64,000 bases of DNA, from positions 221,573 to 285,572 of IMG/VR virus record IMGVR_UViG_3300021520_000002, one strand, 5' to 3'. The position numbers and the translations under genes are program-made. Below are positions 585-54,879 of this stretch, piece after piece. Positions within the stretch are counted from its first letter, which is position 1; each line of letters opens with the position of its first letter. The notes beneath the pieces were generated by a model. That model had not been told where the DNA came from, searched no databases, and saw only the letters and a list, made by a program, of their open reading frames with translations.

Positions 585-2555
585 TTATTCTTTCAGAAAT
601 TGTAATTGAACATCTACCACTTCTTTTGTTCTACTTTTAACGGCGCGATCTTCTGGAAGATGATATTCTCCAGATGTTATGAGTTGTTTTATCAAATCTG
701 GTTTACCTTCTTTCCAATCACTCTTAACGGATAAAAATTCTTTAATTGCCTGATCTGTGCCGTTAGTTATCATACTTTCAATTTCCATTTGACCAATTTT
801 AGAACCACCACCCTTTGATCTACCTTTTAATGGTTGTTGGGTAATAGCTTTAACAGTTCCAAGATCTCTTGCATTCATAATTTTTGAAGCTATTTTATAT
901 AATTTTTGAATATACATTGGAGCACAAAATATATTCTTTAAAGTAAAATCTTCATTTAATAATCCAATATCTAATTTAAGATTCTGTTTCATATATTTAA
1001 TAAGTTGTTTCTTTAATAAAACATTTTCTCTATAAGGTATTGATGTTTTTAATAAATCTTTTATATTTATCTCTGCAAAACATGGGGCTTCAACAAATAA
1101 ATTAGATTCAGTAACATTATTAATAAAATTATGTTTAAATATATCATCAGTTTCAAGATTCTTTATAATATCATTTTCAATTTTATTATAATAATCTTTA
1201 TCTATATGTCTAATAACTGAATCATTTAACCACTTAATTAATTCAGTTGTTTTTTCCGGAGTTTCTCTAATATGTTTATCACAATACATTACAGATTTAC
1301 CAACAATTCCTTCTAGAATTTGACCTAGATTCATTCTTGAGAAAACTGCAAAAGGATTGAAAATTAAATCCAATGGAATGTTTGAATCAACGGCAATAGG
1401 TCTTAAATCATCAGGAAGAATTAAACTAACTACACCTTTGTTTGCATATCTATTTGCTAATTTATCACCATAATAAGTTGATTCTTGTTTTGAAATTTCT
1501 ATTTCCATAATATAACAAACTTCATCTAATTTGATATTTCCTCTTGAACCTTTCTTTTGAGAAAATCTATAATACTTATCCAATATATGTGTTGCATAAT
1601 CACCTACTGTTTTTCTAGCAAGATCTTGCACAACATCTACTATGAATAAAGCATATTTTTTATAAAGACCTTTTATTATATTATGAAGATTAGTATCTAT
1701 AAGATTTATTTCTCTATCTGGTTTTAATCTATGTATTCTTATTCCAGTTACTGTACCATTTTCAACTTTAGATTTTATCTTATTGGTTGAAAATTTAGTA
1801 CCTTCAAGACTATTTAATGTTAATAAATGTGAAATAGACATCGTTTTAAGTGCTTGTTGAACTTTATTTTTGGTTGCCTGAGCATTACCAATATAACTAT
1901 CTGCTCCTTTAGGTATTAATAAACTACAAACTGCATCGTCTTTAATTTTTTGGCCGATATTTGGAAAATACGTAAAAGAATTTGGAATATGATCATACAT
2001 TGTTTTCATTAATGTATATTCATAGATTGGAATATAAATTTTATCAGTAAATACTGCTTTAGCTTTATCGGCAAAAGATTCAGAAATAACTATTGAATCT
2101 TCATGGTTAAAACCAAAAAATAACATAAATCCTGTAAATGTATTATAACCATATGAAGGTACACCATTTTTAAAACAATCATATGAAGCTATAATATCTC
2201 CTTTCTTAAATTTATCTCCTTCATCCAAACTATATCTTAATGTTGTTCCATAAATACTATACACTCTTTTAACTGCTGGAGTATGTATTTCTTCAAGTCT
2301 ATCTAAATTATCATATTTAACAATTAATAAATCATTATTATTGTTTTTATATTTTACTGAACCATCATCTTTAGCAATATTAATTCCTAAAATAGAATTA
2401 TCTCTAACATGTCTGTAATCAGAACCCACAACATATGGAATATCTGTATTAGGACTTGTTAAAGCTTGTTGTACCTGTTTAGATATCATACTTGCTCTTG
2501 TTGCGTCTGTTGAAGATAAAAATGGTATACTATTTAGATTAATACTTGTGATCAT
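585..2555 (-). CDS. phage multisubunit RNA polymerase, beta-like subunit, C-terminal part
   Basis: RpoB motifs GFNHEDSIVIS, GDKLANRYANKGVVS, NPFAVFSRMNLGQ, TQQPLKGRSKGGGSKIGQME. Confidence 0.92.
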   Translation of the reverse strand: MITSINLNSIPFLSSTDATRASMISKQVQQALTSPNTDIPYVVGSDYRHVRDNSILGINIAKDDGSVKYKNNNNDLLIVKYDNLDRLEEIHTPAVKRVYSIYGTTLRYSLDEGDKFKKGDIIASYDCFKNGVPSYGYNTFTGFMLFFGFNHEDSIVISESFADKAKAVFTDKIYIPIYEYTLMKTMYDHIPNSFTYFPNIGQKIKDDAVCSLLIPKGADSYIGNAQATKNKVQQALKTMSISHLLTLNSLEGTKFSTNKIKSKVENGTVTGIRIHRLKPDREINLIDTNLHNIIKGLYKKYALFIVDVVQDLARKTVGDYATHILDKYYRFSQKKGSRGNIKLDEVCYIMEIEISKQESTYYGDKLANRYANKGVVSLILPDDLRPIAVDSNIPLDLIFNPFAVFSRMNLGQILEGIVGKSVMYCDKHIRETPEKTTELIKWLNDSVIRHIDKDYYNKIENDIIKNLETDDIFKHNFINNVTESNLFVEAPCFAEINIKDLLKTSIPYRENVLLKKQLIKYMKQNLKLDIGLLNEDFTLKNIFCAPMYIQKLYKIASKIMNARDLGTVKAITQQPLKGRSKGGGSKIGQMEIESMITNGTDQAIKEFLSVKSDWKEGKPDLIKQLITSGEYHLPEDRAVKSRTKEVVDVQLQFLKE

Positions 2556-2599
2556 ATTTTACGCCTCCTCTTATATTTTGAATAAAAAATTTTATTACC

Positions 2600-2630
2600 A
2601 TATTATTTCTATATGAATAAGTTAAAAATT
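2600..2630 (-). promoter_or_regulatory. putative phage promoter (TTCATATAGAAATAATA on coding strand), representative copy
   Basis: same motif recurs about 22 times in intergenic DNA, oriented with the downstream gene. Confidence 0.75.
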
Positions 2631-2634
2631 CAAT

Positions 2635-3075
2635 TCAATTTATAAGAGATTTTTTAATTTCTGGAATCTGAAAAGCATCTCCTGGAATCTGAAAAACAAA
2701 TTCAGCATTTGATTTTTCTTTTGGTTGCCAAAACAATACAATCTTTTTCTCTTTTTCTTCTTCCACCCAAAATGAAAACTGATTAACATATTTAGCTGGT
2801 GACATCATAACCATCATAGGCATTACAGTATTGAATGTGTTACTTATAAATTCAAATAATTTTTCATGAATAGACATAATACATTCAGCTGAGAATGTAA
2901 TATCATCTAAATCAAGTTCATGGATTTTATCAACATCAGCATGAATAATCTTACTTAGATGATTTTTGGTTTCTTCTACCTTTTTTTCATAATCTAAATT
3001 ATAACTAAACATATTAGTTTTCCCCAATAGTTTTTTAGTTCTATTTTTTACTCGATTTTTTAAAGATTGTATCAT
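2635..3075 (-). CDS. hypothetical protein
   Basis: 146-aa ORF, ATGA overlap with upstream gene, SD GGAGGTG. Confidence 0.7.
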   Translation of the reverse strand: MIQSLKNRVKNRTKKLLGKTNMFSYNLDYEKKVEETKNHLSKIIHADVDKIHELDLDDITFSAECIMSIHEKLFEFISNTFNTVMPMMVMMSPAKYVNQFSFWVEEEKEKKIVLFWQPKEKSNAEFVFQIPGDAFQIPEIKKSLIN

Positions 3076-3506
3076 CCCACCTCCCTGTTTGGTTCTTCAT
3101 CAGGTTTTTCAAATGGATAAACAATCCATCTATCATTAGGACATTCTTCAACATAATATGTTGGTTTTACAATAGATCTTGGTTTATAATGAATTGTTGC
3201 AACATCAAATTGTTGTATAAAAGAATCAAGAGTGACACCAGTGTCCGATAAATCATCTACTATTAATATATCATTAATTATTTCTCTATCATTTGTTCTT
3301 AAATATACAGTATATCTGACTGCAAAATCATGTTTATCTAAAATTTCAAGTTCTAAATAATGACTTAAATAAACTCCAACAATTAAGCCACCTCTTGGAA
3401 TTGCATAAATATATTCATATTTACCTTTTGGAATTTTATTAGCTAATATTATAATACTATCATGAAACTCTTGTGGTGTTACAAAGTATTTGTTCCATTC
3501 ACTCAT
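3072..3506 (-). CDS. type I phosphoribosyltransferase (xanthine/guanine PRT-like)
   Basis: IPRGG loop, PRPP-binding ILIVDDLSDTGVT, C-terminal WIVYPFE. Confidence 0.88.
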   Translation of the reverse strand: MSEWNKYFVTPQEFHDSIIILANKIPKGKYEYIYAIPRGGLIVGVYLSHYLELEILDKHDFAVRYTVYLRTNDREIINDILIVDDLSDTGVTLDSFIQQFDVATIHYKPRSIVKPTYYVEECPNDRWIVYPFEKPDEEPNREVG

Positions 3507-3657
3507 TTATTTCTCCATTATTTAATTTTTTGTTCAAAAAACATTTCAAGAATAGTAAGAGTTAATACCATTAGGTCATTTTCATTAGCTATTATTGGAA
3601 ATAAAGATTCTTCCTTATAAGCTGTGATTGGTGATATTTTGAATATTTTTTGATGAA

Positions 3658-3855
3658 TCATTTAGTATCTCCTTCCCAGTTCAAAGCATCATATTTGCCG
3701 ATAAACACATTCCATGTAATTTTTAATGTTCTCCACCAATGATTTAATCCATAATATGGTAAAGGCCTTGCTGGTATCCATCTTCCATCTTTAACTTCTT
3801 GATCTGTAGACCATTGTTTTATTTCAACTGCGGAATATGTATTTGGGTGTCTCAT
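3658..3855 (-). CDS. hypothetical protein
   Basis: 65-aa ORF, SD AAGGAG, WIPARP motif. Confidence 0.65.
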   Translation of the reverse strand: MRHPNTYSAVEIKQWSTDQEVKDGRWIPARPLPYYGLNHWWRTLKITWNVFIGKYDALNWEGDTK

Positions 3856-3993
3856 TCTTGTTCTCCTTAATATTTCTCTTTATAAACTATAAACATTAAA
3901 ATATAATCTTCTTGATTTAAAAATTTAACATCTATAACATCTAATTTTTTTAACCATGGATTAATATCTAATTCTTGACCATTAATTTCAAGT

Positions 3994-4179
3994 CTAACTG
4001 TTTTTAGTTGTACTATCATTTTTTTCCCATCTTTTTAAACAGTCTATTACAGTAAGTTCTGGGACAATAACGTTTGAATATGATCCATTTGTAGCACTAA
4101 CTGCAACTCTAATTGTTGCCCATTTAGCTATTCCTTTTGGTAATTTCCAAGCAATCCATTTTTGAATTTTATCTTTCAT
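3994..4179 (-). CDS. hypothetical protein
   Basis: 61-aa ORF with SD, TAG stop. Confidence 0.6.
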   Translation of the reverse strand: MKDKIQKWIAWKLPKGIAKWATIRVAVSATNGSYSNVIVPELTVIDCLKRWEKNDSTTKNS

Positions 4180-4478
4180 ATTATTTCTCCTTTTTTAACT
4201 TCTATTGACATAAGACCAGCTTCTTGTAATATCTTTTTGCATTTTGGAATTACCATAATTTTTTGAAGAGCATTTGCAATATTTTCAAGATTTGTTTTAT
4301 TATCTAAATTAAAAGTCATTGTACTTCCATCTTTAGCATAAAAAATTATATTACGTGGAATAGCACCACCTATTCTAAGAATTTCACAGCATGATTCTTT
4401 TTTTGCTAAATCAATACCGATAGGTGTATATTTTTCAATCATTTCATCAAAGCCATCTTTTTCAGTTTCTTTTTCCAT
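4176..4478 (-). CDS. hypothetical protein
   Basis: start moved to ATG after AAGGA; longer annotated start runs into the palindrome. Confidence 0.6.
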   Translation of the reverse strand: MEKETEKDGFDEMIEKYTPIGIDLAKKESCCEILRIGGAIPRNIIFYAKDGSTMTFNLDNKTNLENIANALQKIMVIPKCKKILQEAGLMSIEVKKGEII

Positions 4479-4503
4479 ATTTTTTCCTTTAAATAAAAAT
4501 TTT

Positions 4504-4535
4504 ATCGGCAAGATCTATTTCTAGATCCTGCCGAT
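4504..4535. repeat. dispersed palindromic hairpin, copy 2
   Basis: ATCGGCAAGATCT-ATTTCT-AGATCCTGCCGAT. Confidence 0.92.
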
Positions 4536-4539
4536 TTTC

Positions 4540-5373
4540 TTAGTCCAGAAAGGCAACAGCTCTGGAAGCTTTCGCTTCCTGTTCTCTGTTCAAACGAACA
4601 GAGTACCATCCTTTCAAATTGATTGTCTTATGATCACTATGGCGAATATAGCCACGAACATAAACCTGTGCATCCCGAGTCATCTGTCTCCATCCTAGTT
4701 TATCCTTATCTGAACTATATTGATCATGAAACTCTTTCAGAGTAAGACCATTAGGAGCATAACTTCTATGAACCATCACAGTTGTTCCACCAGTGCGATA
4801 CAACTCCTCACAGATATGAGGTTTTGCACCTCTTCTTCCGTTGGTAATCGGCTCATTTTTGTGAATAAGTTTCGGATTTGGATCAATATTAGCCTTGGTG
4901 AAAAACCATTCACCCTGTCTAATATAGACCTCATTTTTGCGCCGAGTTCCAGCATGTTCCAGATGTTTTTTCTTCAGAGTTCCTTTCTGAGCATTAACTA
5001 CAGACTCAGGTTTAAGTGCTTCCATAGCATCAAGAACATTTTTCGCTCCAGCTGCTTCCGGTACAGCACAAGTAAACCACTGTCTCTCATCATGTCCGCA
5101 GAGAAATTTGGAAACGGTTTCTTTTCCAACTTTTCCTTGTTTCAGCATAAGGAGCAAATGACGTTCTGCCACTTTTGCATCGATCACAGCTACTTCGAAA
5201 GGAGTATTAGTTTGACGTTCGGAAATAGCAAAAAATTCTCCTTTTCGATCTTTTAACACATCAATACTGATTGCGAGATTTGGAGGCATTCCATCACGAA
5301 AACGTGTTGTTTCTACAAATTTAACTCTCGCGCCGATCTCTTCGAATTTTGTCTTTATTAATTCTACGTTCAT
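4540..5373 (-). CDS. hypothetical protein (RQGEWFF motif)
   Basis: SD AGGAGG then ATG 5373; own promoter motif at 5422; higher GC than flanks. Confidence 0.8.
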   Translation of the reverse strand: MNVELIKTKFEEIGARVKFVETTRFRDGMPPNLAISIDVLKDRKGEFFAISERQTNTPFEVAVIDAKVAERHLLLMLKQGKVGKETVSKFLCGHDERQWFTCAVPEAAGAKNVLDAMEALKPESVVNAQKGTLKKKHLEHAGTRRKNEVYIRQGEWFFTKANIDPNPKLIHKNEPITNGRRGAKPHICEELYRTGGTTVMVHRSYAPNGLTLKEFHDQYSSDKDKLGWRQMTRDAQVYVRGYIRHSDHKTINLKGWYSVRLNREQEAKASRAVAFLD

Positions 5374-5983
5374 TATTCCTCCTAAAAGAAATTGTAGATT
5401 TTTCATTCTACATAAGTATTATTTCTATATAAAGAGTTTGAATATGAAATTATTTTTTTGGGGTTTTTATTAATTTAGTTAAATATGTATCTTGACAGTC
5501 ATCACATCTAATATAAGGTTTTTCAATTTCTTTTCCACAACGACATTTATTAGTTTGTGATTCTTTTTGATCTCCAAAAACTGTGTCATAATTTACATTA
5601 TTATCCATTTAAATGATCTCCCTTAATGGTTGGAAAACTTTTATCAATCTATAAAAATCACTTTTTCTAATTCTTACTTTTTTACCTTCTGTAGAAAATA
5701 TTATATAATCTTCATCAAGATCTTCATAAATTTCCATCACTCCATAATCATATTCTTCAAATTGACTTTCTATTTGTTTTTCTATATCTATGGTAATTTT
5801 TATCATATTTCTCCTTTTTCTTTTTCATTATATTTACAACATGTAGAATCTTCACCTGATTGATAATGTCCATCAAATATACATTTTTCATTATCATCTA
5901 ATTTACAAAGAACTTTTCCACATTTTTCACATATCATTTTTCTCTGACAGATATTACAATCTTTATTCATGTTATTACCTTCC

Positions 5984-6310
5984 TTATTGATAGGAATGTA
6001 AACCTTTTCCAAGTTTAGAAAGTAGTCGATTTTTTGGATCGACATGTTTGTTTTGATTATTAAACATCTGTGGTTCTTTAAATATAATTGGAAAAGGTTT
6101 CAGAACTTCTTGTTTAACTAATTTTTGTTCTTCTATATATGTTTTAAAAGTCATTGGTTTAATTTTAATTGCTGGGGTAACATGGTTAGTTGACTCTTCA
6201 TAATAAAAACAATCATCAGACGGTGAATGTGCTGTTGATGTTATTGGTGTTTGATCTGCTAAAGTTGTCCAAGTACCAGTGCTATTATATCTATTATAAT
6301 AAGATACCAT
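5984..6310 (-). CDS. hypothetical protein
   Basis: 108-aa ORF, SD GAGGT. Confidence 0.6.
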   Translation of the reverse strand: MVSYYNRYNSTGTWTTLADQTPITSTAHSPSDDCFYYEESTNHVTPAIKIKPMTFKTYIEEQKLVKQEVLKPFPIIFKEPQMFNNQNKHVDPKNRLLSKLGKGLHSYQ

Positions 6311-6321
6311 ATTTAACCTCT

Positions 6322-7095
6322 TTATTTTTCATCAAAACATTCCAATCTTTTTAAAGCTGAATCACTACAAGAATTTAAAGATTTAACAATATCAAAATAT
6401 TGAGAATATATATGAAGACCATCTGAATATGCTATCATTTCTCCATCTTGTAATCTTATATCAGATCCTTCATCTTCTAATCCAGAATTGACCATTGCTA
6501 AAACATATTCTTTTACTCTTTGAAATCCCCAAAGATTCTCTGGCATACCACAAACAAGATCCCAAGAACGAAAGAAAACTGATGATCTTAATATTCCATC
6601 AACAGCTTTAAAAGACATAACTCTCAAACAAGGTGGATCACTCATTTTTGTACAAGTATTATCACCAACATTAATAGTAGCTTGATTTGTTTTTCCTTTA
6701 GAAATTATTAGATTTTGTATAATATCTTCAACTTGTGGTTTAATCCATGTTGAATATTTATAAATTTCATTTGGTTCTAATTTATCATCCATTAGATATT
6801 TTGCAAAATAAGCATCAACAGCCTCTAAATCAGTTGGTCTGAAAGGAGAAGTTTCAGATGTGAATGGTTCCCAAATTGAAGGTGTTTTAATTTTTATCAA
6901 AACATATGGTAATTGTAATCTAAATTGTCCTATATAACTCCCAAATTCATCAACTTTTGAAGCGTTTCCAACTTTATATTTTATACTGTTTTTACTTTCA
7001 AGACACAACCACATTACACTTCTCCAAGCTTGAGCAATAGTAAATTCTTCTACATAATTAGTTTCCCAATTAATCATTCTTTTCTCCATTTTCAT
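6322..7095 (-). CDS. thyA: thymidylate synthase family protein
   Basis: catalytic DPPCLR, FRSWDL, PENL (Asn, dUMP-type), LHIY. Confidence 0.8.
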   Translation of the reverse strand: MKMEKRMINWETNYVEEFTIAQAWRSVMWLCLESKNSIKYKVGNASKVDEFGSYIGQFRLQLPYVLIKIKTPSIWEPFTSETSPFRPTDLEAVDAYFAKYLMDDKLEPNEIYKYSTWIKPQVEDIIQNLIISKGKTNQATINVGDNTCTKMSDPPCLRVMSFKAVDGILRSSVFFRSWDLVCGMPENLWGFQRVKEYVLAMVNSGLEDEGSDIRLQDGEMIAYSDGLHIYSQYFDIVKSLNSCSDSALKRLECFDEK

Positions 7096-7366: not shown

Positions 7367-7388
7367 TTCTACTCCTTTGATTAATTAA

Positions 7389-7457
7389 AGGACATAGGTA
7401 GTCCTGCCTTGGCGTCTTTACCCTACACAGAATGCACTGTGATAAGACCTATGTCCT
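7389..7457 (-). ncRNA. candidate structured intergenic RNA (three-way junction)
   Basis: perfect 11-bp closing stem AGGACATAGGT/ACCTATGTCCT enclosing CACAG/CTGTG and GCC/GGC helices; GC-rich. Confidence 0.4.
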
Positions 7458-7463
7458 GATTCA

Positions 7464-8596: not shown

Positions 8597-8611
8597 TTTA
8601 TCTCCTTCTTA

Positions 8612-8926: not shown

Positions 8927-8954
8927 ATTCCGTCTCCTTCAATACATTTAACCC

Positions 8955-45900: not shown

Positions 45901-48900
45901 GTTACAACAGTATCACCTTGGGTTGAATGGATAAGATATAATACAGGTGGATTTACATATATAACAACATTTTATGTTCAAGCATTAACACTAGGAACAA
46001 GTTGGCAGTTAAGATGTGGTACACAAATAATAGGAATAATAAATTCTACAGGAAGTTATGAAATTACTTGGGATGCAATATCTACAGGTGATTTTTCAAT
46101 TATTTCAAATAACGTTTCAACATTAGATATTTTACAACCATTATCATTAAAAGAAATTAATGAAGTTCCTGGTGCTAGTAGTGCTATAGCATTACAAGCT
46201 GTTGCTACTGATACAATAAATAGTTCACAAACTATATTTGGAGCAGTTTGCATAACAAACTCACATACTGAAAGAGGTATGAGATCAGCTGCTGTGCTTG
46301 GAATGACTACATGGTATGGAAGTAGATATGTTTTAGGAACAGATTCATCCACAGTTTTAGGAACAGATGGGGCAATATATGTATGTAAAATAACTCATAG
46401 ATCAAATGTGGGATATTTGTATGGTGGTTATAGTCACAATCAACCTTCTGCTGGTTTTTGGTGGGAAGATTTTTGGAGAGTTTTTATTAATATTTGGAAT
46501 ACTGGTTGGCATTATACTGTTGATACTTCTGTTATCGAATCTGGTGAAATTTATACATGTATATTAGAACATACTGCAGATTCAACTAGTGAACCAGGTG
46601 TTGGTCTTGATTGGGCATTATATTGGAGTGATGAAGGACCAGTTACCACATTACCGTGGGCAGCAAATACAGATTATGTTGCTAAATCTTATGAATGTAC
46701 AACAAAACACACTTCAACAGATGATGATAGACCAATAACTGGTATAAATTGGGCAACGTATTGGACATTAGATACTAGTGCATTTGCTACTGGTAACGTT
46801 TGGGTTAAAAATAGAAGATATGTAGATATAGGTCCAACAGTAATAACTGGACAACAAAGTATAGTTGACGTTCAACAAGAAGATGCATCACCAAGTGCTA
46901 ATACTGGGGATGATTGTACTGTAACTAGTTATTATGCAAATGCTATACCTGGTGGAAGAAGAGTATTTTCTTATTATGGTGGTGATCCCATATATATAGA
47001 TAGAGAAACAGCAGCTAACAGAGAAATTGATGCTGCGATTTTTGCCGATTATACATATCCAACAAGAGAAGCAATAGTTCAGTGTGGTGCTGTAACACAA
47101 TCCATAGATATTGGTGGTTCTCCGAATTATAATTCATATGGACATATTATTGGTACACTTGGATTAGTAACAAATACGTTTAACGGCAAATTATCTTTAT
47201 ATGGTCTTGAAGGAAGATGTGATGGTAAAGGATTAAATGTTAGCGCTTGGAATATTGGTGTATTTGGTATGGCTAATTGGACTAATCCAATTTATGATGA
47301 TAGTTTTGATGAAAATTATTATAAAGTTTTTACAACAGCTGATGTAGATGTAGTAGCTGATACAATAACTTTTATAGATGGACATGGGAAAGTAGATGGT
47401 GATATTGTTGAATTTACTGTTGAAGCTGGAACTTTACCTTTAGGTTTATCAATAGATTCAATTTATACAGTTTTAAATAGTACACCAACAACATTACAAG
47501 TTGGTTATGGTTCAACAGTTCTTCCACTTGTAAGTGTTGGTACAACTGGTCCTTTTAGAATGTATCTGGGAAGATCTGCACCAATGTTAACATATGGAGT
47601 TCAAAGTAGAACATATATGATTAATGATGATGGATCAGAATATTCAACTAACTTTAATAATAATTTTGCGATAAATACATGTTTTGCAGCTATGAAAGCT
47701 GTAGGTGGTTGGATGCAATATACTTTATCCGGTTATGATCCAATTATGTTAACATCTGGAGATTATGTTATAGGTACAGATTCAGATTATGTTTTAACTG
47801 GTGGTACTATTTATAGATGTAAGATAAATCATAAAGCTGGAGGAATGTTTGGTGATCAGGAAGCTCCTGGTCAAATGTTTGGATTTTTATATTGGAGTCC
47901 AGTGACAGATGCTTCTGGTCCAGTGACTGCTCCTGCTTGGTTAAAAGGTAAAGATTATAAAGCAAATTATTATAAATGTACAACAACACATACTTCATCA
48001 TATGATGATCGACCAGTAAATGGTGTAGATTGGGCAGGATATTGGACGAAAGAATATATTTATACACCCATGGGTGAAGATCATATTTGGTATGAAGGAA
48101 AAAGTTATAGAGGACAAGTAACAATGGCATATACTGGATTCCATGTGGATCAAGTTGGTGGTGGTGCCTTAGTTGTTAATGGAGTAACACCCGGTTCAGT
48201 AAATACTGGATGGGTGGAAGTTCGAGTTGATAGTGGTATCGGTTGGATACCTTATTGGTCAACAGGAGCTGTAGCAACAAGTGGAACTTCTGGAACAGGT
48301 GGAACATCAGGTACAAGTACAAGTGGTACTTCAGGTACAAGTACAAGTGGAAGTTCTGGAACAAGTACATCTGGTTCATCTGGAACAAGTACAAGTGGTA
48401 CTTCTGGAAGTAGTAGTGATATAGATTTAACTGAAGGTAATTGGTATCTTGGAACTGGTTGGAGTATAGGTAGTTTAATAAAAGTTTCAGCAACAAGTTC
48501 TGGAATGGCTTGGTCTAATGATCATGTTCCGACTATTGGAGAAACTTATACAGCCACAGTAGTGTGTGATTCATATGATGCTGGAGGTGGTCTTGGAATT
48601 TATTGGAACTATGGTGGGATATGTGGATCAAATGGTATAGCACTTCATGCTGGAACAAATACACGTACTGGAGTGGCAACATCAGGAAACACAGCTTTCT
48701 TCTTCCCACTTAATGATGCGTGTACAGCTACAATTTCACGTATTAATATAACAACAGGAACGAGTGGAAGTAGTGGAACATCTGGAACAAGTACATCTGG
48801 TTCATCTGGAACAAGTACAAGTGGAACATCTGGAACAAGTACAAGTGGAACTTCTGGAAGTAGTAGTAATGTATCTTTAGATGTAAGTAATTGGTTAACT

Positions 48901-49677
48901 GCTATTGGTTGGACTGCAGATGGTACTTATTTAACAAAAGCATCAGCAACTGGGTCTGAAATGACTTGGGCTAATGATCATATTGCAACTCCTGGACAAA
49001 CTTATACAGTAGAGGTTGTATGTGATTCATATAGTGCTGGAGGTGGTCTTGGAATTTATTGGAACTATGCAGGATTATGTGGTTCAAATGGTACACCACT
49101 TCATACTGGAACAAATACAGTTACTGGAGTGGCAACAGGAACAGTGTCACCACTTTTCTTCCCACTTAATGATGCGTGTACAGCTGTAATTTCACGTATC
49201 ACTATAACAGTTGGAACATCAGGCACAAGTGGAAGTAGTGGAACATCTGGAACAAGTACGAGTGGAACATCTGGAACAAGTACAAGTGGAACATCTGGAA
49301 CAAGTACAAGTGGAACTTCTGGTGCAGATTCAGTATCACTTGAAGCATCAAATTGGTTAGCTGGTGTTGGATGGACATATGGTACTACATTATCAAAAAC
49401 TGCAGGTGTTGAAGGTGATTTAATTTATGCTAATGATCATATAGCAAGTGCAGGATCTTCATATACAGTTACAGTTATTGCTGATTCATACACTACTGGT
49501 GAAAGTTTAGGTATTTATTGGAATCTTGGTGGATTATGTGGTGTGAATGGTAAACCACTTGTTGCTGGAACAAATTCAGCAACTGGAACAGCATCAACAA
49601 ATGGATCAGTATTATTTTTTCCATTCGGTACAGGATGCGCATGTGTAATTAGTTCAATTACAGTACATCAAAATTAA
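42976..49677 (+). CDS. giant tail-fibre/virion appendage protein (2233 aa)
   Basis: N-terminus paralogous to 50569 gene; multiple CBM5/12-like modules; three C-terminal beta modules joined by GTS linkers. Confidence 0.75.
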   Translation: MADQVTPTQERYIDPYMQRIFDFDTVDAKVYLSRATNMLLKSIGNNLVLDGFDIENPTITSNTIISVDVNPGLAIQDYVLCENLAGTGVIPKVTLSMDVAGLTDTTVGLAHIGVFLDYQFLHTVNRNDFVLRMYHVPASGFGLTPAGFSAPRSATLIGIICYTKDPVTGYVTYAWVLPELVGGVPDYENWPSLLAETVTFYLKGWKEHYPHINFHDLVKFIGGYEGWVSGPDSAIDESIAVFDGTSGKLIKMIERNVRVIPDCSLGINVEVPCDNVLGTDGNIYRCRVSHTSVDEVLPTSEVTNLGQGYRCKLAHTAAAINEPGVGANWATYWTVKISVAGPAWVSGTDYIITGNRPITGNFIDPETLHEEWTKYWDRNYDKLTADVWTAGRPYITNMDSIMEMTIGNSEVHLKKYCANIEPYSGFDTNFWNAERQYRPAMITGDLVTMGFDYSYGYNWIHCGPPNTIIDNIMGWEPYNALMIWNHKTQEAWDTFPVQYGIVCENQNYATNSWVFPIAISGWQTEAGQSEIEGQDGVCYRCIKDHTSDPTNRPFSGATHNGPGTVSNLANSPNVVGVGTQFLSDFYMNHTIVIDGEYHFIAHVTDDTNLITGIPSELGDTWSTTPISLAHTNVAYEVCDWNEFWAKGGGAGMNPWANGRFYQSRGTSNSFINIAFHGISMSYGQFGMGQLRPFYGECRYMGGSYANTHYGDDTGNKPLGWGSMRVAMCFMAESNLYEDGWEGKPGTIPVTEGTVYGFYAKAFDGGAFKYSFWGQNQLYIGKTDTSYTGQLAAIYAKYEKSCRLNETIIGVFAVAGDIPQELVTPANDSNFSWNPTDWVNDTLVECVCHPGTEEVPPLPWQQSYLRCVSSAAGQYGHLPAANFPVEGITLVTNGGLTYRCIRPYTSTLDTEPGVGASWASYWELFPDWDIGIDYVFGDFIVKGSVNVYKCILAHTSAAITEPGVGASWSVCWKYAGVTTVSPWVEWIRYNTGGFTYITTFYVQALTLGTSWQLRCGTQIIGIINSTGSYEITWDAISTGDFSIISNNVSTLDILQPLSLKEINEVPGASSAIALQAVATDTINSSQTIFGAVCITNSHTERGMRSAAVLGMTTWYGSRYVLGTDSSTVLGTDGAIYVCKITHRSNVGYLYGGYSHNQPSAGFWWEDFWRVFINIWNTGWHYTVDTSVIESGEIYTCILEHTADSTSEPGVGLDWALYWSDEGPVTTLPWAANTDYVAKSYECTTKHTSTDDDRPITGINWATYWTLDTSAFATGNVWVKNRRYVDIGPTVITGQQSIVDVQQEDASPSANTGDDCTVTSYYANAIPGGRRVFSYYGGDPIYIDRETAANREIDAAIFADYTYPTREAIVQCGAVTQSIDIGGSPNYNSYGHIIGTLGLVTNTFNGKLSLYGLEGRCDGKGLNVSAWNIGVFGMANWTNPIYDDSFDENYYKVFTTADVDVVADTITFIDGHGKVDGDIVEFTVEAGTLPLGLSIDSIYTVLNSTPTTLQVGYGSTVLPLVSVGTTGPFRMYLGRSAPMLTYGVQSRTYMINDDGSEYSTNFNNNFAINTCFAAMKAVGGWMQYTLSGYDPIMLTSGDYVIGTDSDYVLTGGTIYRCKINHKAGGMFGDQEAPGQMFGFLYWSPVTDASGPVTAPAWLKGKDYKANYYKCTTTHTSSYDDRPVNGVDWAGYWTKEYIYTPMGEDHIWYEGKSYRGQVTMAYTGFHVDQVGGGALVVNGVTPGSVNTGWVEVRVDSGIGWIPYWSTGAVATSGTSGTGGTSGTSTSGTSGTSTSGSSGTSTSGSSGTSTSGTSGSSSDIDLTEGNWYLGTGWSIGSLIKVSATSSGMAWSNDHVPTIGETYTATVVCDSYDAGGGLGIYWNYGGICGSNGIALHAGTNTRTGVATSGNTAFFFPLNDACTATISRINITTGTSGSSGTSGTSTSGSSGTSTSGTSGTSTSGTSGSSSNVSLDVSNWLTAIGWTADGTYLTKASATGSEMTWANDHIATPGQTYTVEVVCDSYSAGGGLGIYWNYAGLCGSNGTPLHTGTNTVTGVATGTVSPLFFPLNDACTAVISRITITVGTSGTSGSSGTSGTSTSGTSGTSTSGTSGTSTSGTSGADSVSLEASNWLAGVGWTYGTTLSKTAGVEGDLIYANDHIASAGSSYTVTVIADSYTTGESLGIYWNLGGLCGVNGKPLVAGTNSATGTASTNGSVLFFPFGTGCACVISSITVHQN

Positions 49678-49687
49678 AAAATAGAAT

Positions 49688-49719
49688 ATCGGCAAGATCT
49701 ATTTCTAGATCTTGCCGAT
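49688..49719. repeat. dispersed palindromic hairpin, copy 9
   Basis: ATCGGCAAGATCT-ATTTCT-AGATCTTGCCGAT after fibre stop. Confidence 0.95.
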
Positions 49720-49754
49720 TATTTTAAAAGAAAATGAAAAGAGAGGAAATATAA

Positions 49755-50540
49755 ATGAATGTAACAATAGAAAATATTTACTTAATCAAAACAACATTAT
49801 CAAGAATTATAACTATGTTAGAAAATGAAAGAAATTTATCTATTAGAGATTCACACGCATTAGTTAGAGATCTTAAAATTATTGAATCAGAATTTGGAAT
49901 GATTGAAGAGACTAAAAACAAGATAATCAACAAATATTCAATTTCACAAGGTAGTACTGAACCTAATATACCTCTAGAAAATATGAGAGAATATCAAAGA
50001 GAATTCAAAGAGTTATTAAGTACTGTTATGGATCTTAATTTAATGACTTTTGATATTGCTGTTTTTAAATATGCTAAATTTTTATCACCATTAGATATAA
50101 AAAGTCTAAGTCCTTTAATTAATAATTTTAAAAATAGTCTAGTCCCATCTAAACCCATAAAGGTTGTGTTTGGACAGATAAGAGAATCAAAAGTATTCTT
50201 TGAAAAAATTGTTTTTGGAAATTTTGATTTCATATCTTCTATGAAGTTTTTTCAGATAATAGAAGAAACAGATAGATATCAAAACTCAATTGAACAACAT
50301 AGATTAAATTTAATTGATTCAATTTTAAGAGGACTTCCAGAATTAACTGAAGAAACTCCTAAAGATGTTAAAGATAAAATTTTAGAAAAGAGAAATGAAT
50401 TTAATATGAAATTTACAGACTATTTATTACAAGAAATTGAAATTAATATTCCATCATTTTCTCTTGAAGAGTTTGAAAGATTAAATATAAAAGTTTCACC
50501 ATTAGAATATTATAATCTGGATTATATGATGGAGAATTAA
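49755..50540 (+). CDS. DUF1617-like protein, tandem duplicated domain (possible fibre chaperone)
   Basis: two copies of the E..(K/R)..(I/L)I..EF..(L/Y)L..EIE helical pattern; paralog of 58178 and 55061. Confidence 0.55.
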   Translation: MNVTIENIYLIKTTLSRIITMLENERNLSIRDSHALVRDLKIIESEFGMIEETKNKIINKYSISQGSTEPNIPLENMREYQREFKELLSTVMDLNLMTFDIAVFKYAKFLSPLDIKSLSPLINNFKNSLVPSKPIKVVFGQIRESKVFFEKIVFGNFDFISSMKFFQIIEETDRYQNSIEQHRLNLIDSILRGLPELTEETPKDVKDKILEKRNEFNMKFTDYLLQEIEINIPSFSLEEFERLNIKVSPLEYYNLDYMMEN

Positions 50541-50568
50541 ATATTTAAAGAATTAAATGGAGGAAGGT

Positions 50569-53500
50569 ATGGCAGATCAAGCAACTCCAATTCAAGAACG
50601 ATATATTGATCCTTATATGCAAAGAATTTTTGATTATGACACTACAGATTCGAGAGTATTTATATCACGGGTAACAAATCTATTACTTAAATCTGTTGGG
50701 AATAATATTGTTTTATTCGGACTCGAGCCAATAAATTTAAGACCCACTATTTCAGATCCACCATCATCAATCATATCTGTAGATATCACTTCAGGATTAG
50801 CTATACAAGATTATGTACTTTGTGATAATTTATCTGGAGTTGGGATTGAACCTAATATAACTTTAACTATGGATGTTGCAGGATTAGATGATACAACTGT
50901 TGGTGGTGCATATCTTGGAATTTGGATAAATTATCAATTTTTAGAATCAATGGAATCTAATCCTTTTATTTTAAAAATGTATCATGTAAATTCTGATGGT
51001 TCTGGGGTGAATCCAGCTGGATTTGATCCATTAAAAAATTGTACATTAGTTGCAATTTTAGGTTTTACAAAAATAGGTGGTGTTGTTACTGACGTGTGGA
51101 GTTTACCAGCAGTAGTTGATTATCAACATTGGCCTACTTTATTAGTTGGTTCAACAACTTATTATTTAAGAGGTTGGGAAAATTCAAATCTTAATACTAA
51201 TGAAATTATAAGATATGTATGTGGTGAAGAAGGATATGTTAAAGGTCCAGATATAGTAGTTGATGGAAGTATAGCTTTATTCGATGGAACAACAGGTCAA
51301 ATTATTAAAGACAGTGGGTTAACTCCAGTTTTTGGAGATGTATATGGACCAACAGGTTCTACAACAGGACATATTGCTATATTTGATGATAACACTGGTA
51401 AATTATTAGCTGATGGTGGATTAGTACCAGATGGAGATGTGATCGGTCCTAGTTCATCTGTTACTGGAAATTTAGCTATTTTTGGAGATACATCAGGAAA
51501 GTTAATTTCAGATGGTGGTTCAATACCAACTGGAGATGTAGTTGGTCCAATGGGATCAGTTGCAGGACACTTGGCAGTATTTGATGATGTAACAGGTAAA
51601 GTAATTTCAGATGGTGGACCAGTTCCAGTTAGTGTTGGAGATGTGGTTGGACCAGTAGGTGGAGCAGATGATAGTCATTTAGTTTTATTTGATGGATTAA
51701 CTGGAAAATTGATTAAAGATGGTGGTCCAGTTCCATCTGGTTTAGGAGATGTTATTGGTCCTACAGGTTGTACTCCAGGAAATTTAGCTGTATTTAATGA
51801 TGCGACTGGTAAGATATTAGCTGATGGTGGATCATTACCTATTTTTGGTGATGTTGTTGGTCCTGCATCATCTAGTGATGGTAATTTAGTTTTATTTGAT
51901 GGAATATCTGGTAAATTAGTTAAAGATGGTGGTGCAATGCCAATTGGAGATGTAGTTGGACCAGCGGCAGCAACCCCAGGAAATTTAGCTGTATTTAGTG
52001 ATATAACTGGTAAAGTATTAGTTGATGGTGGAGCATTACCAGTTAGTCTTGGAGATGTGGTTGGACCTGGTGTGGCTATTAGTGATCATATTGTTTTATT
52101 TAGTGGAACAACTGGTAAACTAATAAAAGATGGTGGAGCACTACCAGCTGGTTTAGGAGATGTAGTTGGACCAGCAACTGCTATATCAGGACATTTAGCT
52201 GTATTTAGTGGAACAACTGGTAAATTAATAGTTGATGGTGGGGCTGTACCATCTGGTTTAACTAGACTTATACCAGATCAATCTGCTGGTGTTCTTCCTG
52301 CAAGTACTGTTCGAGGAACTGATGGACTTTATTATCGTTGTAGGGTCGCACATTCAGCTCTTGCCGCTAATCGGCCGATAACTGGTGCTGCATTAGATAC
52401 AATAACTCTTAAACCTGAATGGAAAAAGTATTGGGATGTTGATTCATCTCTTACAACAGCTCCAACTTGGGTTTCTGGAACATATTATGTAACAAATATG
52501 GATTCAATTTTTGATTTAACTACTGGAAATACTTTTATTCATTTAAAGAAATATGGTGCAACTATTGATCCATATAATACTTTCTGTTCAACATTTTATG
52601 ATGGTTCAGATGATATACATACTAAGTTAGTTGTTGGTGATATAAATATTCTGGGAACTAATAGAAGTTATAATTATACATTTATTCATCTTGGTCCACA
52701 TTCAAATAAAGATAATGTTGAAGATGTTTATAAAGGTGACACAGGATTAATGGTTTGGAATCATCCTGATCCAACAAAATTAGAAGATTGGTTTCGTTGG
52801 TATCAGAGTGGTATAATAGTTGAAAATCAAAATTATACAACAGTACAATATCACCAAAATTTTGGTTTACAAGCTTGGTCTACAGAAGCTGGTCAGTCTG
52901 AAGTTAAAGGAACTGATAATAATGAAACTGGTTATAGATGTATTTTAACACATGTTGCTGCAACAAATAATAGACCAACTACTGGTACATATTGGGCAAC
53001 ATATTGGGAAGTTGGTGGTGGGTGTGGTCAAAATCAGTGGGTTTCAGGAACAACATATCAAGCTAAAGGAACTGCTCGTGGAGATTCTTATGGTGTTTAT
53101 GGTATGGCCGCTGGTTATGGTACAGAAGGAAATTATACAGGTGTATTAGGTGATTCTTGGTATCTTGGTGGTTCATATGCATATCCAAAAGGTGTATATA
53201 CTGCTCCTGAAGTAAATGGTTGGAATGCTAATAGAATGGCCATAGGTGTTGCTGGTAGAACTAGAATTTATCAAGATGGTTGGGAAGCTCATGATGGAAC
53301 AGTTCCAGTAACTACAGGTTCTATGTATGCATTTTACGCTCACGCCGCTATTGGTGGACAATATAAATATTCTTTTTATGGTAAAGATCAACTTTATATA
53401 GAAAAAACTTATGAAGCGGTTTATCCACAGAATTCAGCAATATATAGTGTTTATCAATCAAACTTTTCAGCTTCATCAGAAAATTCAAGTATATCAGGAT

Positions 53501-54879
53501 TTATATCAAATAATCCTTCTGAAGTGTTTGTTAATGATGGTGATAGGTATGGTAATGTTGGTGGAACTTTTACATGGATAAGACGTACATTATCTGTTTT
53601 TGCACAGACAGGTTCATATCCAACTAGTTATATTAATGCAGCGGCAAGCGCGTCTAATCAATATGCTGAACTTCCAGTATTAAGCGCTCCAATGCAAACT
53701 GGACATACTTATAAAATATTAGTTGATGTTGCTAGTATAGTATCAACATGGACTATAAGATCTTTTGATGGTACACAAACTATTGGAACAATATCAGCAA
53801 ATGGAAGTTTTCGATTTGATTGGACATGTTTAAGTACAAATTCAGTTATTGGTTTAGATATAATGAGAGAAGGAAAAGGAGAATATGGGGCTGGAGGTAC
53901 ATTATCTGCTAGTGGAGGTGGAGGTTCTGGTTTTACTGGAACTTATACTGTGTCTGGTGGTAATATTTCATCTGTCACAATAACAAATTCTGGATCTGGT
54001 TATACTTCTATACCAACTATTGTATTATCTGGTGGTGGTAGTGCAGTAATAACTGCTAGAGTTTCACCAGGTGGATTTCGTATAGTATCTGGTTCAAGTT
54101 CATCTCGAGCTCAATTTTCTAATTTTTCTAGTAAAGAAGTTGTTACAGCAGTATCAACATCAGTAATGTCTGGTGTTAAAGGTTCTGTTACAGATGGTGT
54201 TGATAATTCACATCATATGGTTGGAGTAAAAGGTAGTTGTATTTCTATAGCTGAAAATTATCCATCTTTACAATTACAAGGTGTTTATGGTAATACTCAG
54301 TGGAGTGGATCAACAACAGTTTTAGGAAGTGATGGTATTACTGTTTATAGATGTAAATTATCTCATGTATCAGCAACAATTAATAGACCATATTCTGGAG
54401 CAAATTGGGCAACATATTGGGAAACAGAAACTACTCCAGGAACAGGTGCTGTTGCATGGGTATTAGGTAGAAGATATGTTGTTTATGGTCCTGCTTTAGT
54501 TACAGGTATTCAAGCATCTACAAAAGTTTATCAAGTTGATGGAGCAACAGCTAATAGTTCTTATCGTAGCTGTAATATTGCAGCTGCATTTTATGCTGAA
54601 CCATGTATTGGTGGATCGGCAAAATATTCACTTGTTGGTTATGATCCTATAAAAATATATGATTATGAAGGTTATCCAGCTGGAACACAATCGGTATCAA
54701 TAACTGGTAAACGTGTAGCTCCTGCAGCAGCTGTGGTAGGGAGTGTAGTAGGTACTGGACCTGGTCAAAATGCTGGATGGATTAAAGCTGTTATTACACC
54801 AGGAGATGGACCAGCACCAGGTGTTGCCGTTAATGGGTGGATACCATATTGGACAACTGTTTCTCCCACTGGACCTTAA
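50569..54879 (+). CDS. tail-fibre protein, paralog of 42976 gene
   Basis: MADQxTPxQERYIDPYMQRIFD N-terminus; ten GDVxGP...FDGxTGKLIxDGG repeats; CBM-like modules; GWIPYW end. Confidence 0.75.
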   Translation: MADQATPIQERYIDPYMQRIFDYDTTDSRVFISRVTNLLLKSVGNNIVLFGLEPINLRPTISDPPSSIISVDITSGLAIQDYVLCDNLSGVGIEPNITLTMDVAGLDDTTVGGAYLGIWINYQFLESMESNPFILKMYHVNSDGSGVNPAGFDPLKNCTLVAILGFTKIGGVVTDVWSLPAVVDYQHWPTLLVGSTTYYLRGWENSNLNTNEIIRYVCGEEGYVKGPDIVVDGSIALFDGTTGQIIKDSGLTPVFGDVYGPTGSTTGHIAIFDDNTGKLLADGGLVPDGDVIGPSSSVTGNLAIFGDTSGKLISDGGSIPTGDVVGPMGSVAGHLAVFDDVTGKVISDGGPVPVSVGDVVGPVGGADDSHLVLFDGLTGKLIKDGGPVPSGLGDVIGPTGCTPGNLAVFNDATGKILADGGSLPIFGDVVGPASSSDGNLVLFDGISGKLVKDGGAMPIGDVVGPAAATPGNLAVFSDITGKVLVDGGALPVSLGDVVGPGVAISDHIVLFSGTTGKLIKDGGALPAGLGDVVGPATAISGHLAVFSGTTGKLIVDGGAVPSGLTRLIPDQSAGVLPASTVRGTDGLYYRCRVAHSALAANRPITGAALDTITLKPEWKKYWDVDSSLTTAPTWVSGTYYVTNMDSIFDLTTGNTFIHLKKYGATIDPYNTFCSTFYDGSDDIHTKLVVGDINILGTNRSYNYTFIHLGPHSNKDNVEDVYKGDTGLMVWNHPDPTKLEDWFRWYQSGIIVENQNYTTVQYHQNFGLQAWSTEAGQSEVKGTDNNETGYRCILTHVAATNNRPTTGTYWATYWEVGGGCGQNQWVSGTTYQAKGTARGDSYGVYGMAAGYGTEGNYTGVLGDSWYLGGSYAYPKGVYTAPEVNGWNANRMAIGVAGRTRIYQDGWEAHDGTVPVTTGSMYAFYAHAAIGGQYKYSFYGKDQLYIEKTYEAVYPQNSAIYSVYQSNFSASSENSSISGFISNNPSEVFVNDGDRYGNVGGTFTWIRRTLSVFAQTGSYPTSYINAAASASNQYAELPVLSAPMQTGHTYKILVDVASIVSTWTIRSFDGTQTIGTISANGSFRFDWTCLSTNSVIGLDIMREGKGEYGAGGTLSASGGGGSGFTGTYTVSGGNISSVTITNSGSGYTSIPTIVLSGGGSAVITARVSPGGFRIVSGSSSSRAQFSNFSSKEVVTAVSTSVMSGVKGSVTDGVDNSHHMVGVKGSCISIAENYPSLQLQGVYGNTQWSGSTTVLGSDGITVYRCKLSHVSATINRPYSGANWATYWETETTPGTGAVAWVLGRRYVVYGPALVTGIQASTKVYQVDGATANSSYRSCNIAAAFYAEPCIGGSAKYSLVGYDPIKIYDYEGYPAGTQSVSITGKRVAPAAAVVGSVVGTGPGQNAGWIKAVITPGDGPAPGVAVNGWIPYWTTVSPTGP
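51235..52245 (+). repeat. ten tandem ~33-35-aa GDVVGP fibre repeats
   Basis: visible in translation. Confidence 0.85.

Follow-up and report, generated by a model that had tools for sequence, protein, structure and literature searches.

An eight-letter DNA word shared with gene-end hairpin arms is over-represented inside the genes of a freshwater jumbo phage

The genome of an uncultivated 286-kb freshwater jumbo phage carries far more copies of the 8-mer ATCGGCAA inside its genes than expected by chance. The same word forms the outer half of the arm of a sequence-conserved hairpin that follows stop codons, and it behaves like a selected genome tag, as uptake sequences and Chi do in bacteria. 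No molecule that reads the word has been identified.

Occurrence of the word
The region analysed (the window) is a 64,000-nucleotide stretch of the 285,572-bp virus record IMGVR_UViG_3300021520_000002. An earlier note listed 17 copies of the word outside hairpins, and all 17 coordinates hold an exact ATCGGCAA or its reverse complement TTGCCGAT. The note's observation is confirmed and robust. The window contains 35 exact copies, of which 16 form eight perfect hairpins, two (4504 and 40882) belong to hairpins with a decayed partner arm and 17 are solitary. All 17 solitary copies lie inside ORFs, eight in sense and nine in antisense orientation. As the note stated, one of them carries the full 13-nt arm ATCGGCAAGATCT. 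The window also holds 15 solitary variant copies. The features are as follows.

549..580 (-): gene-end hairpin with perfect 8-mer arms; the sense strand is -, it lies 4 nt after the upstream stop codon and it is more stable on the - strand (-19.5 vs -14.8 kcal/mol)
4504..4535 (-): gene-end hairpin with one arm mismatch; the only hairpin in 1-20000 also flagged by an intrinsic-terminator scan
13876..13908 (-): gene-end hairpin
15449..15480 (-): gene-end hairpin
38133..38164 (-): gene-end hairpin, directly followed by an early-type promoter
40004..40036 (-): gene-end hairpin
40858..40889 (-): decayed hairpin; only the arm at 40882-40889 is intact and the partner arm has 3 mismatches
42094..42125 (-): gene-end hairpin, followed by an early-type promoter
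49688..49719 (+): gene-end hairpin after the 2233-aa ORF
58117..58150 (+): gene-end hairpin after the collagen-like tail-fibre ORF
2067..2074 (+): solitary ATCGGCAA, antisense in the RNA polymerase beta-like ORF 585-2555
3695..3702 (-): solitary copy, sense
8261..8273 (-): solitary copy with the full 13-nt arm, sense in the DHH-family ORF
12558..12565 (+): solitary copy, antisense
18133..18140 (-): solitary copy, sense
22188..22195 (-): solitary copy, sense
24038..24045 (-): solitary copy, antisense
25544..25551 (-): solitary copy, antisense
30159..30166 (+): solitary copy, antisense
30461..30468 (+): solitary copy, antisense
31714..31721 (-): solitary copy, sense
34811..34818 (+): solitary copy, antisense
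36486..36493 (+): solitary copy, antisense
37224..37231 (-): solitary copy, sense
44191..44198 (+): solitary copy, sense in the 2233-aa ORF
47042..47049 (-): solitary copy, antisense in the 2233-aa ORF
54615..54622 (+): solitary copy, sense in the 1440-aa ORF
1389..59313 (no strand assigned): 15 solitary variant copies A-[A/C/G]-CGGCAA, starting at 1389, 13174, 24666, 26182, 26222, 27305, 28226, 30031, 36600, 45609, 47182, 52361, 53640, 54824 and 59306

Dinucleotide shuffles of the window give a mean of 0.43 copies (maximum 4). The whole record contains 156 copies, and the word is the most over-represented 8-mer under an order-2 Markov model (2.0 expected). The note had named in advance a lack of enrichment over codon-preserving shuffles as the result that would overturn its claim. 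This did not occur: coding sequence holds 103 copies, whereas synonymous-codon shuffles within genes give 8.7±2.7 (maximum 19) and codon-order shuffles give 2.7±1.7. Two small corrections to the note are required. The GC content of the genome is 29.4% rather than the assumed 26%, and position 2 of the word is degenerate. The form A-N-CGGCAA occurs 240 times and accounts for most of the 262 CGGCAA in the genome, with a degeneracy that resembles a position weight matrix (T 156, G 39, C 25 and A 20 at position 2).

Independence from coding
A stricter test considered the places where the protein sequence would allow the word. Of 323 such sites, 101 (about 31%) carry it, against 3.6 expected. Occupancy is 21-45% in each of the six frame and orientation classes. 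The compatible peptides are themselves slightly enriched (323 against 269). As the note claimed, the copies rely on rare codons: GGC is 3.2% of Gly codons, GCC 5.4% of Ala, CCG 5.5% of Pro, TCG 2.8% of Ser and CGG 1.6% of Arg, and between 12% and 32% of all such codons in the genome sit inside the word.

Across the genome, 97 of 100 solitary copies lie in ORFs, and sense and antisense are equal (49:48). Spacing is Poisson-like (CV 0.93, KS p 0.85), and copies are distributed uniformly along genes, with no placement relative to gene ends. The bias towards one strand of the genome is modest (64:36 for exact copies and 107:75 for the degenerate form) and does not flip where gene orientation flips.

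Gene-end hairpins
The hairpin consists of T-ATCGGCAAGATCT, a loop of about 6 nt and then AGATCTTGCCGAT-A, with the word at the base of the stem. Twenty-eight hairpins lie 4-15 nt after stop codons. They are oriented, as a U·G wobble falls on the sense strand only (12 cases to 1). They are positionally conserved across about 30% flank divergence, with compensated core variants. The stems are strong (-15 to -22 kcal/mol), but most hairpins lack a U-tract and only 1 of the 4 in 1-20000 passes the T-tract rule for intrinsic terminators; several are followed by the T-rich upstream part of an early promoter. These observations leave undecided whether the hairpins are rho-independent terminators. In a comparison with Rfam, only tRNAs reached gathering score, so the hairpin matches no curated covariance model.

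Only hairpin sub-words that contain CGGCA are enriched outside hairpins, while inner-stem and loop words are at expectation.

Distribution in related phages
The relatives G001, G002, G003 and G005 are also enriched in the word, and a reversed-word control gives 0. The complete relatives G006 and G007 have ordinary terminators and no comparable word. Across 46 metagenome loci, hairpins and solitary CGGCAA(G) co-occur; they are found together in one clade of metagenomic jumbo phages and are absent from its sister lineages.

The solitary copies are tightly coupled to the hairpins, a link that the note underrated, and their profile changes together with the arm profile from lineage to lineage. Where the arms keep A at position -2 (100%), solitary copies do too (89-94%). 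Where the arms vary at this position (about 50%), so do the solitary copies (42-51%), and in that group the loop-side positions are more arm-like.

Individual sites are only partly conserved. Twelve of 37 solitary sites are shared between this phage (G000) and G001. Equally rare codons outside the word are retained only 13-27% each, which implies 0.04-0.11 per word (binomial p 4e-4 to 5e-6). Retention is not, however, significantly above that of an average 8-mer (0.32 against 0.19-0.245, p 0.17), and evidence for site-level constraint therefore depends on the rare-codon baseline. Hairpin copies look homogenised within lineages in their loops and outer stem, with lineage-specific sequences at orthologous positions. 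Some copying process among repeats therefore exists, and it could contribute to the spread of the word.

Proposed model
The note's core inference of a selected, genome-wide, DNA-level signal comparable to uptake sequences or Chi is supported, although whether the force is selection or drive was not shown. The proposed model, held as somewhat more likely than not, is as follows. ATCGGCAA is a short DNA recognition word, with the profile T-A-N-CGGCAA-R-A in this genome and the core CGGCAA(G) across the clade. A force at the level of the DNA, and not of protein or mRNA, keeps adding solitary copies wherever the proteins tolerate them. As a result, about one third of all synonymously possible sites are occupied, on either strand and in any frame, and individual sites turn over on the scale of genus-level divergence. 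One sequence-specific reader of duplex DNA most likely recognises both the solitary copies and each hairpin arm. The benefit, or the transmission bias, would grow with copy number, as for uptake sequences or Chi, and inverted pairs of the word would double as the RNA hairpins that close genes.

The analysis itself demonstrates the enrichment, its independence from coding, its restriction to one clade, its co-variation with the arms and the oriented, stop-codon-adjacent placement of the hairpins. That a protein reads the word, and what the benefit is, are inferences. Candidates include attenuation of a host helicase-nuclease, self-recognition for packaging or replication, or a site for one of the four HNH-AP2 endonucleases of the phage. 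No UvrD-family helicase or PD-(D/E)xK nuclease (the AddAB/RecB type), no common DNA methyltransferase and no RAYT transposase was detected in the phage. The host is unknown, and a host-borne origin of the word was not properly tested.

A bolder version of this model is possible but less likely than not. A clade of jumbo phages would mark its own DNA with a dedicated 8-11-bp word read by a phage-encoded protein, for selective packaging, for priming of replication or recombination, or for telling phage DNA from host DNA. This virus-borne self-tag would spread by a DUS-like molecular drive during co-infection, and the same word would have been recruited to build the gene-end hairpins of the clade. 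That would be the first uptake-sequence-like drive system described in a virus.

Alternative explanations
The word may instead be a Chi-like site for the RecBCD or AddAB of the host, switching the enzyme from degradation of the injected linear phage DNA to recombination; more copies in both orientations would give better protection, and the inverted pairs in hairpins would serve both directions. This reading is tentative, although it is the strongest of the alternatives. The core is an asymmetric 8-mer at a density of one per 1.8 kb, more copies appear to be better, sites turn over and one strand is modestly preferred. The variant AGCGGCAA (39 copies) contains AGCGG, the Bacillus subtilis Chi, and the Chi-rich genome of phage P1 is a precedent. 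As the phage has no AddAB/RecB-like gene, any such enzyme would belong to the host. However, the strand bias (59-64%) is weak for Chi, G006 and G007 show no comparable word, and Chi does not explain why 13-nt arms and their loops are conserved. In addition, none of 401 sampled genomes of one Clostridia-type class reaches a comparable density (maximum about 1 per 14 kb, against 1 per 2.6 kb for TATCGGCAA in the phage). This sample includes the unpublished genomes G107 and G193, which were unremarkable and on which the claim does not depend. Somewhat less likely still is that the solitary copies are a by-product of the hairpin repeat family without separate function, seeded into coding sequence by short-patch gene conversion or template switching among the roughly 60 arm copies and persisting when harmless. 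The homogenised hairpins and the tracking of arm sequence by solitary copies would fit, as would the clustered substitutions involved in many gains and the five full 13-nt arm matches (about 1 expected from independent positions). Against this, only sub-words containing CGGCA are enriched, and 84 solitary copies differ from the arm at position 2 while matching on both sides of it, most having A rather than the arm's G at position 9. This pattern suits a recognition matrix and not copied tracts, and copying of 8-nt patches has no known mechanism.

It is doubtful that the word is bound or nicked by the HNH_3+AP2 proteins, for example to start recombination-dependent replication. G000 has four paralogues (59-66% identical), both complete genomes lacking the word (G006 and G007) lack them, and the word contains GCCG, which resembles the GCC and DRE boxes read by plant AP2 domains (a lead only); AP2 domains read short GCC-type boxes as monomers. 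Such genes are nevertheless common mobile homing endonucleases, none sits next to a hairpin, there is no binding evidence either way, and one copy also lies in L224, a 4.5-kb contig of a lineage with no CGGCAA. A role in transcripts is improbable, whether by pairing with one arm of the terminator-like hairpins or as sites for an RNA-binding protein or an RNase. The hairpins are oriented with transcription and a solitary copy in either orientation is complementary to one arm, but sense and antisense copies are equally frequent and equally occupied, there is no placement relative to gene ends, and an 8-11-nt duplex cannot compete with a 13-14-bp intramolecular stem of about -20 kcal/mol. Least likely is the modification site suggested in the note, with the word as the target of a methyltransferase or a base-hypermodifying enzyme. 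The phage does carry unusual nucleotide and sugar metabolism genes (PvlArgDC, an Asn-synthase-like protein, ADP-heptose-type enzymes and dUTPase_2). However, a search for C5, N4/N6 and Dam-type methyltransferase genes found none, and being a modification target gives no reason for a 65-fold over-representation.

Comparison with known systems
In anatomy the word is closest to the DNA uptake sequences of Neisseria (DUS) and the Pasteurellaceae (USS). These are also short asymmetric words that are hugely over-represented genome-wide, mostly inside genes, in all frames and both orientations, with inverted pairs forming hairpins at gene ends, lineage-specific dialects and copy number maintained by a weak force at each site. 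Here, the carrier is a virus rather than a competent bacterium, no uptake machinery or pilin reader applies and the process that rewards the word is unknown; reading by the uptake machinery of a naturally competent cell was not examined. Chi sites are likewise asymmetric over-represented words of 5-8 nt, of similar density (about one per 2 kb), found in coding sequence irrespective of frame and plausibly useful to linear phage DNA. The present word is coupled to conserved hairpins and matches no published Chi that could be named. Classical Chi and KOPS are much more skewed in orientation, but as the ends of this genome are unknown, the observed counts do not settle whether polarity relative to replication or DNA entry exists. 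Neither the absence of a phage-encoded enzyme nor the Clostridia-type sample decides, without an identified host, whether RecBCD/AddAB recognises the word.

REP/BIME elements are also repeated, sequence-conserved palindromic hairpins just after stop codons, possibly stabilising mRNA 3' ends. REP half-sites are not enriched inside genes, however, and in this phage no RAYT (Y1_Tnp) was found, the word is not confined to intergenic DNA and the elements are positionally conserved rather than visibly mobile. Cluster A mycobacteriophage stoperators are dozens of copies of one asymmetric 13-14-bp protein-binding site spread along a phage genome, but they lie mostly between genes and are oriented with transcription, whereas the sites described here are inside genes, orientation-neutral and far more numerous. 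HIP1 of cyanobacteria, an analogue proposed in the note, is an 8-mer of unknown function that also saturates a genome, coding sequence included. It is a poor analogue, because HIP1 is a palindrome linked to methyltransferases and ATCGGCAA is not its own reverse complement.

Significance
Genome-saturating recognition words such as DUS, USS, Chi, KOPS and HIP1 are known from cells, and each one has led to a DNA-handling machine. Here, the same statistical anatomy appears in an uncultivated jumbo phage with its own multisubunit RNA polymerases, and the pressure is extreme, as about one third of all sites that could encode the word do so despite codons used 2-7% of the time. The word and its hairpin are a cheap marker for this phage clade in metagenomes, and the word is a handle for fishing out an unknown sequence-specific DNA reader. 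The system is also a natural test of whether a DUS-like drive can act in viruses. Finally, codon usage in such genomes is locally overridden by a non-coding signal, which matters for gene prediction and for models of selection.

Genome context

The 285,572-bp IMG/VR virus record (G000), of which the window is the last 64 kb, has a GC content of 29.4% and comes from lake and freshwater metagenomes. The window encodes split beta and beta-prime-like RNA polymerase subunits, whose nearest deposited relatives (about 23% identity) are the AR9/PBS1 group of jumbo phages. Megablast against deposited phages found nothing. Other genes identified encode a family-B DNA polymerase, a type II topoisomerase, a clamp loader, a ribonucleotide reductase, a RecQ-like helicase, an NAD-dependent ligase and a tail sheath. 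Additional features of the genome are as follows (coordinates on the stretches L073 and L068 are in parentheses).

G000 196391-196658, - strand (L073:16391-16658), and 89097-89270 (L068:9097-9270): multi-copy structured RNA, with further copies in the related fragments G001 (3), G002, G003 and G005
G000 136207-137745, - strand: 512-aa protein with a uracil-DNA glycosylase superfamily domain
G000 111877-115569, - strand, 18700-19170, + strand, and 51678-52385, + strand, and window 13030-13542, - strand, and 26091-26675, + strand: unusual metabolic genes, comprising a set of ADP-heptose-type domains (HAD phosphatase, PfkB kinase, cytidylyltransferase plus SIS isomerase), a pyruvoyl arginine decarboxylase, an asparagine-synthase-like protein, a cpYpsA SLOG protein and a TylF-type methyltransferase
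Window 10482-10556, - strand: tRNA with anticodon CUA (amber suppressor, called tRNA-Pyl by ARAGORN), among nine phage tRNAs
Window 55603-58107 and 59300-64000, and G000 1-1000 and 29-38 kb: long collagen-like Gly-Thr-Ser repeat genes at 44% GC

The structured RNA matches the Rfam group I intron model (57 bits, gathering score 50) when the sensitive filter is used, and an alignment of nine copies shows 24 of 37 predicted pairs with compensatory changes. An early-type promoter lies inside or next to the 196-kb copy, as described for an AR9 intron. The uracil-DNA glycosylase superfamily protein is encoded 12 kb away from the family-B DNA polymerase gene (149974-152079) and is relevant to whether this AR9-like phage uses uracil DNA. 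The unusual metabolic genes may serve DNA or virion modification. Although the suppressor tRNA suggested TAG recoding, ORF statistics gave no support for it. The record both starts and ends inside collagen-like repeats, so its ends are probably assembly breaks, and a simple ORF caller picks shadow ORFs on the opposite strand in these regions.

About 60 copies of an extended AT-rich motif, TTTTnATTTTCAA-N6-TTTCATATAGAAATAATA, lie 20-60 nt upstream of gene starts, mostly in the minus-strand block from 108 to 264 kb (examples in the window are at 2605, 5421, 13925, 22584 and 42657). The motif is shared with G006, a complete and more distant relative (74 copies). By analogy with the AT-rich early promoters of the virion RNA polymerase of AR9 (PMC5312081), these are probably early promoters, although this is an inference. 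It was also considered whether the loop of the gene-end hairpin (TAGAAATA) could be an early promoter, but this was rejected because the early-type promoter is a separate, longer motif that often follows the hairpin.

Enrichment of the word

The observation made in the earlier note holds. The window contains 35 exact copies of ATCGGCAA/TTGCCGAT, compared to 0.43 expected from dinucleotide shuffles. Sixteen of these form eight perfect hairpins, two are the intact arms of decayed hairpins and 17 are solitary, the last group being exactly those listed in the note. All 17 solitary copies lie in ORFs (8 sense and 9 antisense). Genome-wide there are 156 copies, making this the most over-represented 8-mer; 100 copies are solitary, and 97 of those lie in ORFs. 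Position 2 of the word is degenerate (T 156, G 39, C 25 and A 20), such that A-N-CGGCAA covers 240 of the 262 CGGCAA in the genome. The flanks add T at position -1, and R and A after the word. Full-text literature searching for the 8-mer returned only primer sequences.

The word is a DNA-level signal and not a coding artefact; chance, composition, codon usage and peptide repeats were each rejected as explanations. Shuffling synonymous codons within each gene, the comparison that the earlier note had specified as capable of overturning the enrichment, gave 8.7±2.7 copies even though this shuffle keeps the very codons that the word contributes. Shuffling codon order gave 2.7±1.7, whereas coding sequence holds 103. 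In a stricter test, the peptide positions at which the word could be encoded without changing the protein were counted. Of 323 such positions, 101 carry the word, compared to 3.6 expected from codon usage, with an occupancy of 21-45% in each of the three sense and three antisense frames. The codons used are among the rarest in the genome, and between 12% and 32% of all GGC, GCC, CCG, TCG and CGG codons lie inside the word. Compatible peptides are slightly more frequent than in shuffled proteins (323 versus 269), and the pressure therefore also nudges protein sequence. The other strongly enriched words (GGAACAAGTG and similar) are unrelated to this word, as they are explained by the collagen-like Gly-Thr-Ser repeats in structural genes.

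Placement of the copies looks random. Sense and antisense copies are equal (49:48), spacing is indistinguishable from Poisson and copies are uniform along genes. One genome strand is modestly preferred (64:36 for exact copies and 107:75 for the degenerate form), and this preference does not flip where gene orientation flips. The GC-richer right end (34-44% GC) holds fewer copies per kb than the rest, although its composition should favour the word. This fits a region that has been exposed to the pressure for less time, although this is again an inference.

Gene-end hairpins

Twenty-eight good hairpins have the form T-ATCGGCAAGATCT, a loop of about 6 nt, then AGATCTTGCCGAT-A. They lie 4-15 nt after the stop codon of the upstream gene and 14-35 nt before the next start. 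The hairpins are oriented, with the loop reading AGAAAU on the transcript. Where one pair is imperfect, it is a U·G wobble on the sense strand and a C·A mismatch on the other, in 12 cases to 1 (p 0.003), although the copies may not all be independent. Several hairpins are followed directly by an early-type promoter, the classic terminator-then-promoter layout. Most lack a U-tract, and only one of the four hairpins in the first 20 kb passes a simple intrinsic-terminator rule. The hairpins match no Rfam family. They are interpreted as RNA hairpins that close genes, acting as terminators or 3'-end stabilisers, in which the stem sequence is constrained as well as the pairing.

Distribution in related phages

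A scan of viral contigs for the hairpin found four related fragments. G001 is about 80% identical to G000 in nucleotides and collinear with it, while G003, G002 and G005 are about 70% identical. All four are enriched for the word, and the reversed-word control gives zero. Two complete, more distant relatives, G006 (315 kb; 48% identity in the RNA polymerase subunit and 57% in the sheath) and G007 (268 kb), have ordinary, individually different GC-rich terminators and no comparable word. A metagenome scan with the sheath protein gave 46 loci. The CGGCAAGATCT hairpin is present in nearly every locus with 54-100% sheath identity (the exceptions being the G006-like locus L213 and a few short contigs) and is absent at 52% identity or below. 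Solitary CGGCAA(G) copies appear and disappear with it. Hairpins are positionally orthologous across about 30% flank divergence and their arms are almost invariant. Rare core changes are compensated on the other arm, for example CGGCGAG paired with CTCGCCG.

The solitary copies follow the hairpin arms. In G000 and G001, every arm starts A-T-CGGCAA, and solitary copies keep A at position -2 in 89-94% of cases. In the other two groups, the outer two arm positions vary with compensation (A in about 50%), and solitary copies have A in 42-51%. In the more distant of those two groups (61-67% sheath identity), solitary copies resemble the arm more on the loop side, as CGGCAAGA(TCT). Outside hairpins, only arm sub-words that include CGGCA are enriched, while inner-stem and loop words are at expectation. 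Together with the internal degeneracy at position 2, this looks like a recognition matrix with a defined core and does not look like tracts copied from hairpins.

Turnover of solitary copies

Between G000 and G001, 12 of 37 aligned solitary sites are intact in both, and none of about 20 sites is shared with the 70%-identity relatives. This low positional conservation was first read as an argument against selection. Retention is not significant compared to an average 8-mer (0.19-0.245). However, because synonymous sites between G000 and G001 are close to saturation, the reading against selection was abandoned after rare-codon retention was used as the baseline. Rare codons of the kind that the word needs are retained only 13-27% of the time outside the word, which implies 0.04-0.11 per word, and against this baseline the retention is significant. 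The shared fraction (0.32) equals the stationary occupancy (0.31), which is what a continuing force on a limited set of permissible sites would give. An odds ratio of about 40 corresponds to a scaled advantage per site of about 3.7, as inferred from a simple mutation-selection balance.

Candidate readers and interpretation

No reader of the word was identified. Searches of the phage's gene content found no UvrD-family helicase or PD-(D/E)xK nuclease of the AddAB/RecB type, no common DNA methyltransferase and no RAYT. Nicks, DNA ends and base modification at the word were not examined, as only Logan contigs exist for the source lakes and four runs compared with 5.9 kb of sequence gave fragmentary mixed-strain pieces with no read ends and no usable calls at the four word sites. 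The genome does encode four paralogous HNH_3+AP2 endonucleases, 59-66% identical to each other, at the following positions.

G000 19188-19745, + strand: HNH_3+AP2 endonuclease gene
G000 108866-109498, - strand: HNH_3+AP2 endonuclease gene
G000 133874-134434, - strand: HNH_3+AP2 endonuclease gene
G000 135528-136190, - strand: HNH_3+AP2 endonuclease gene

These genes are absent from the complete relatives G006 and G007. As AP2 domains read short GCC-type boxes, the encoded proteins are a lead and a possible reader of the word; a complex of an HNH-AP2 protein with a word-bearing duplex was not modelled. However, such genes are common mobile elements, these are probably homing endonucleases, and one occurs in a lineage without the word.

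The searches for a host likewise gave no candidate. A scan of bacterial genome contigs with a loose hairpin pattern gave only single chance hits in high-GC genomes, and a screen of 401 genomes of one class for TATCGGCAA found no phage-like density. The latter sample includes two unpublished genomes, G107 and G193, on which nothing depends. The reversed-word control proved imperfect in this screen because cellular codon bias alone gives ratios up to 8-fold. The host of the phage is unidentified.

The interpretation offered in the earlier note, a selected genome-wide signal analogous to DNA uptake sequences or Chi, was supported in its general form. The enrichment and its DNA-level character are shown by the analysis, while the early promoter assignment, the shorter exposure of the right end and the advantage per site are inferred. 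The closest analogue in anatomy is DUS/USS, with inverted pairs as gene-end hairpins, solitary copies in genes and lineage dialects, whereas Chi is the most concrete mechanistic candidate. Membership in either family cannot be claimed because the defining readers are untested and, for Chi, the orientation polarity is also weak. The general model, in which the phage carries a selected or driven duplex-DNA recognition word that is shared with the hairpin arms, is considered somewhat more likely than not.
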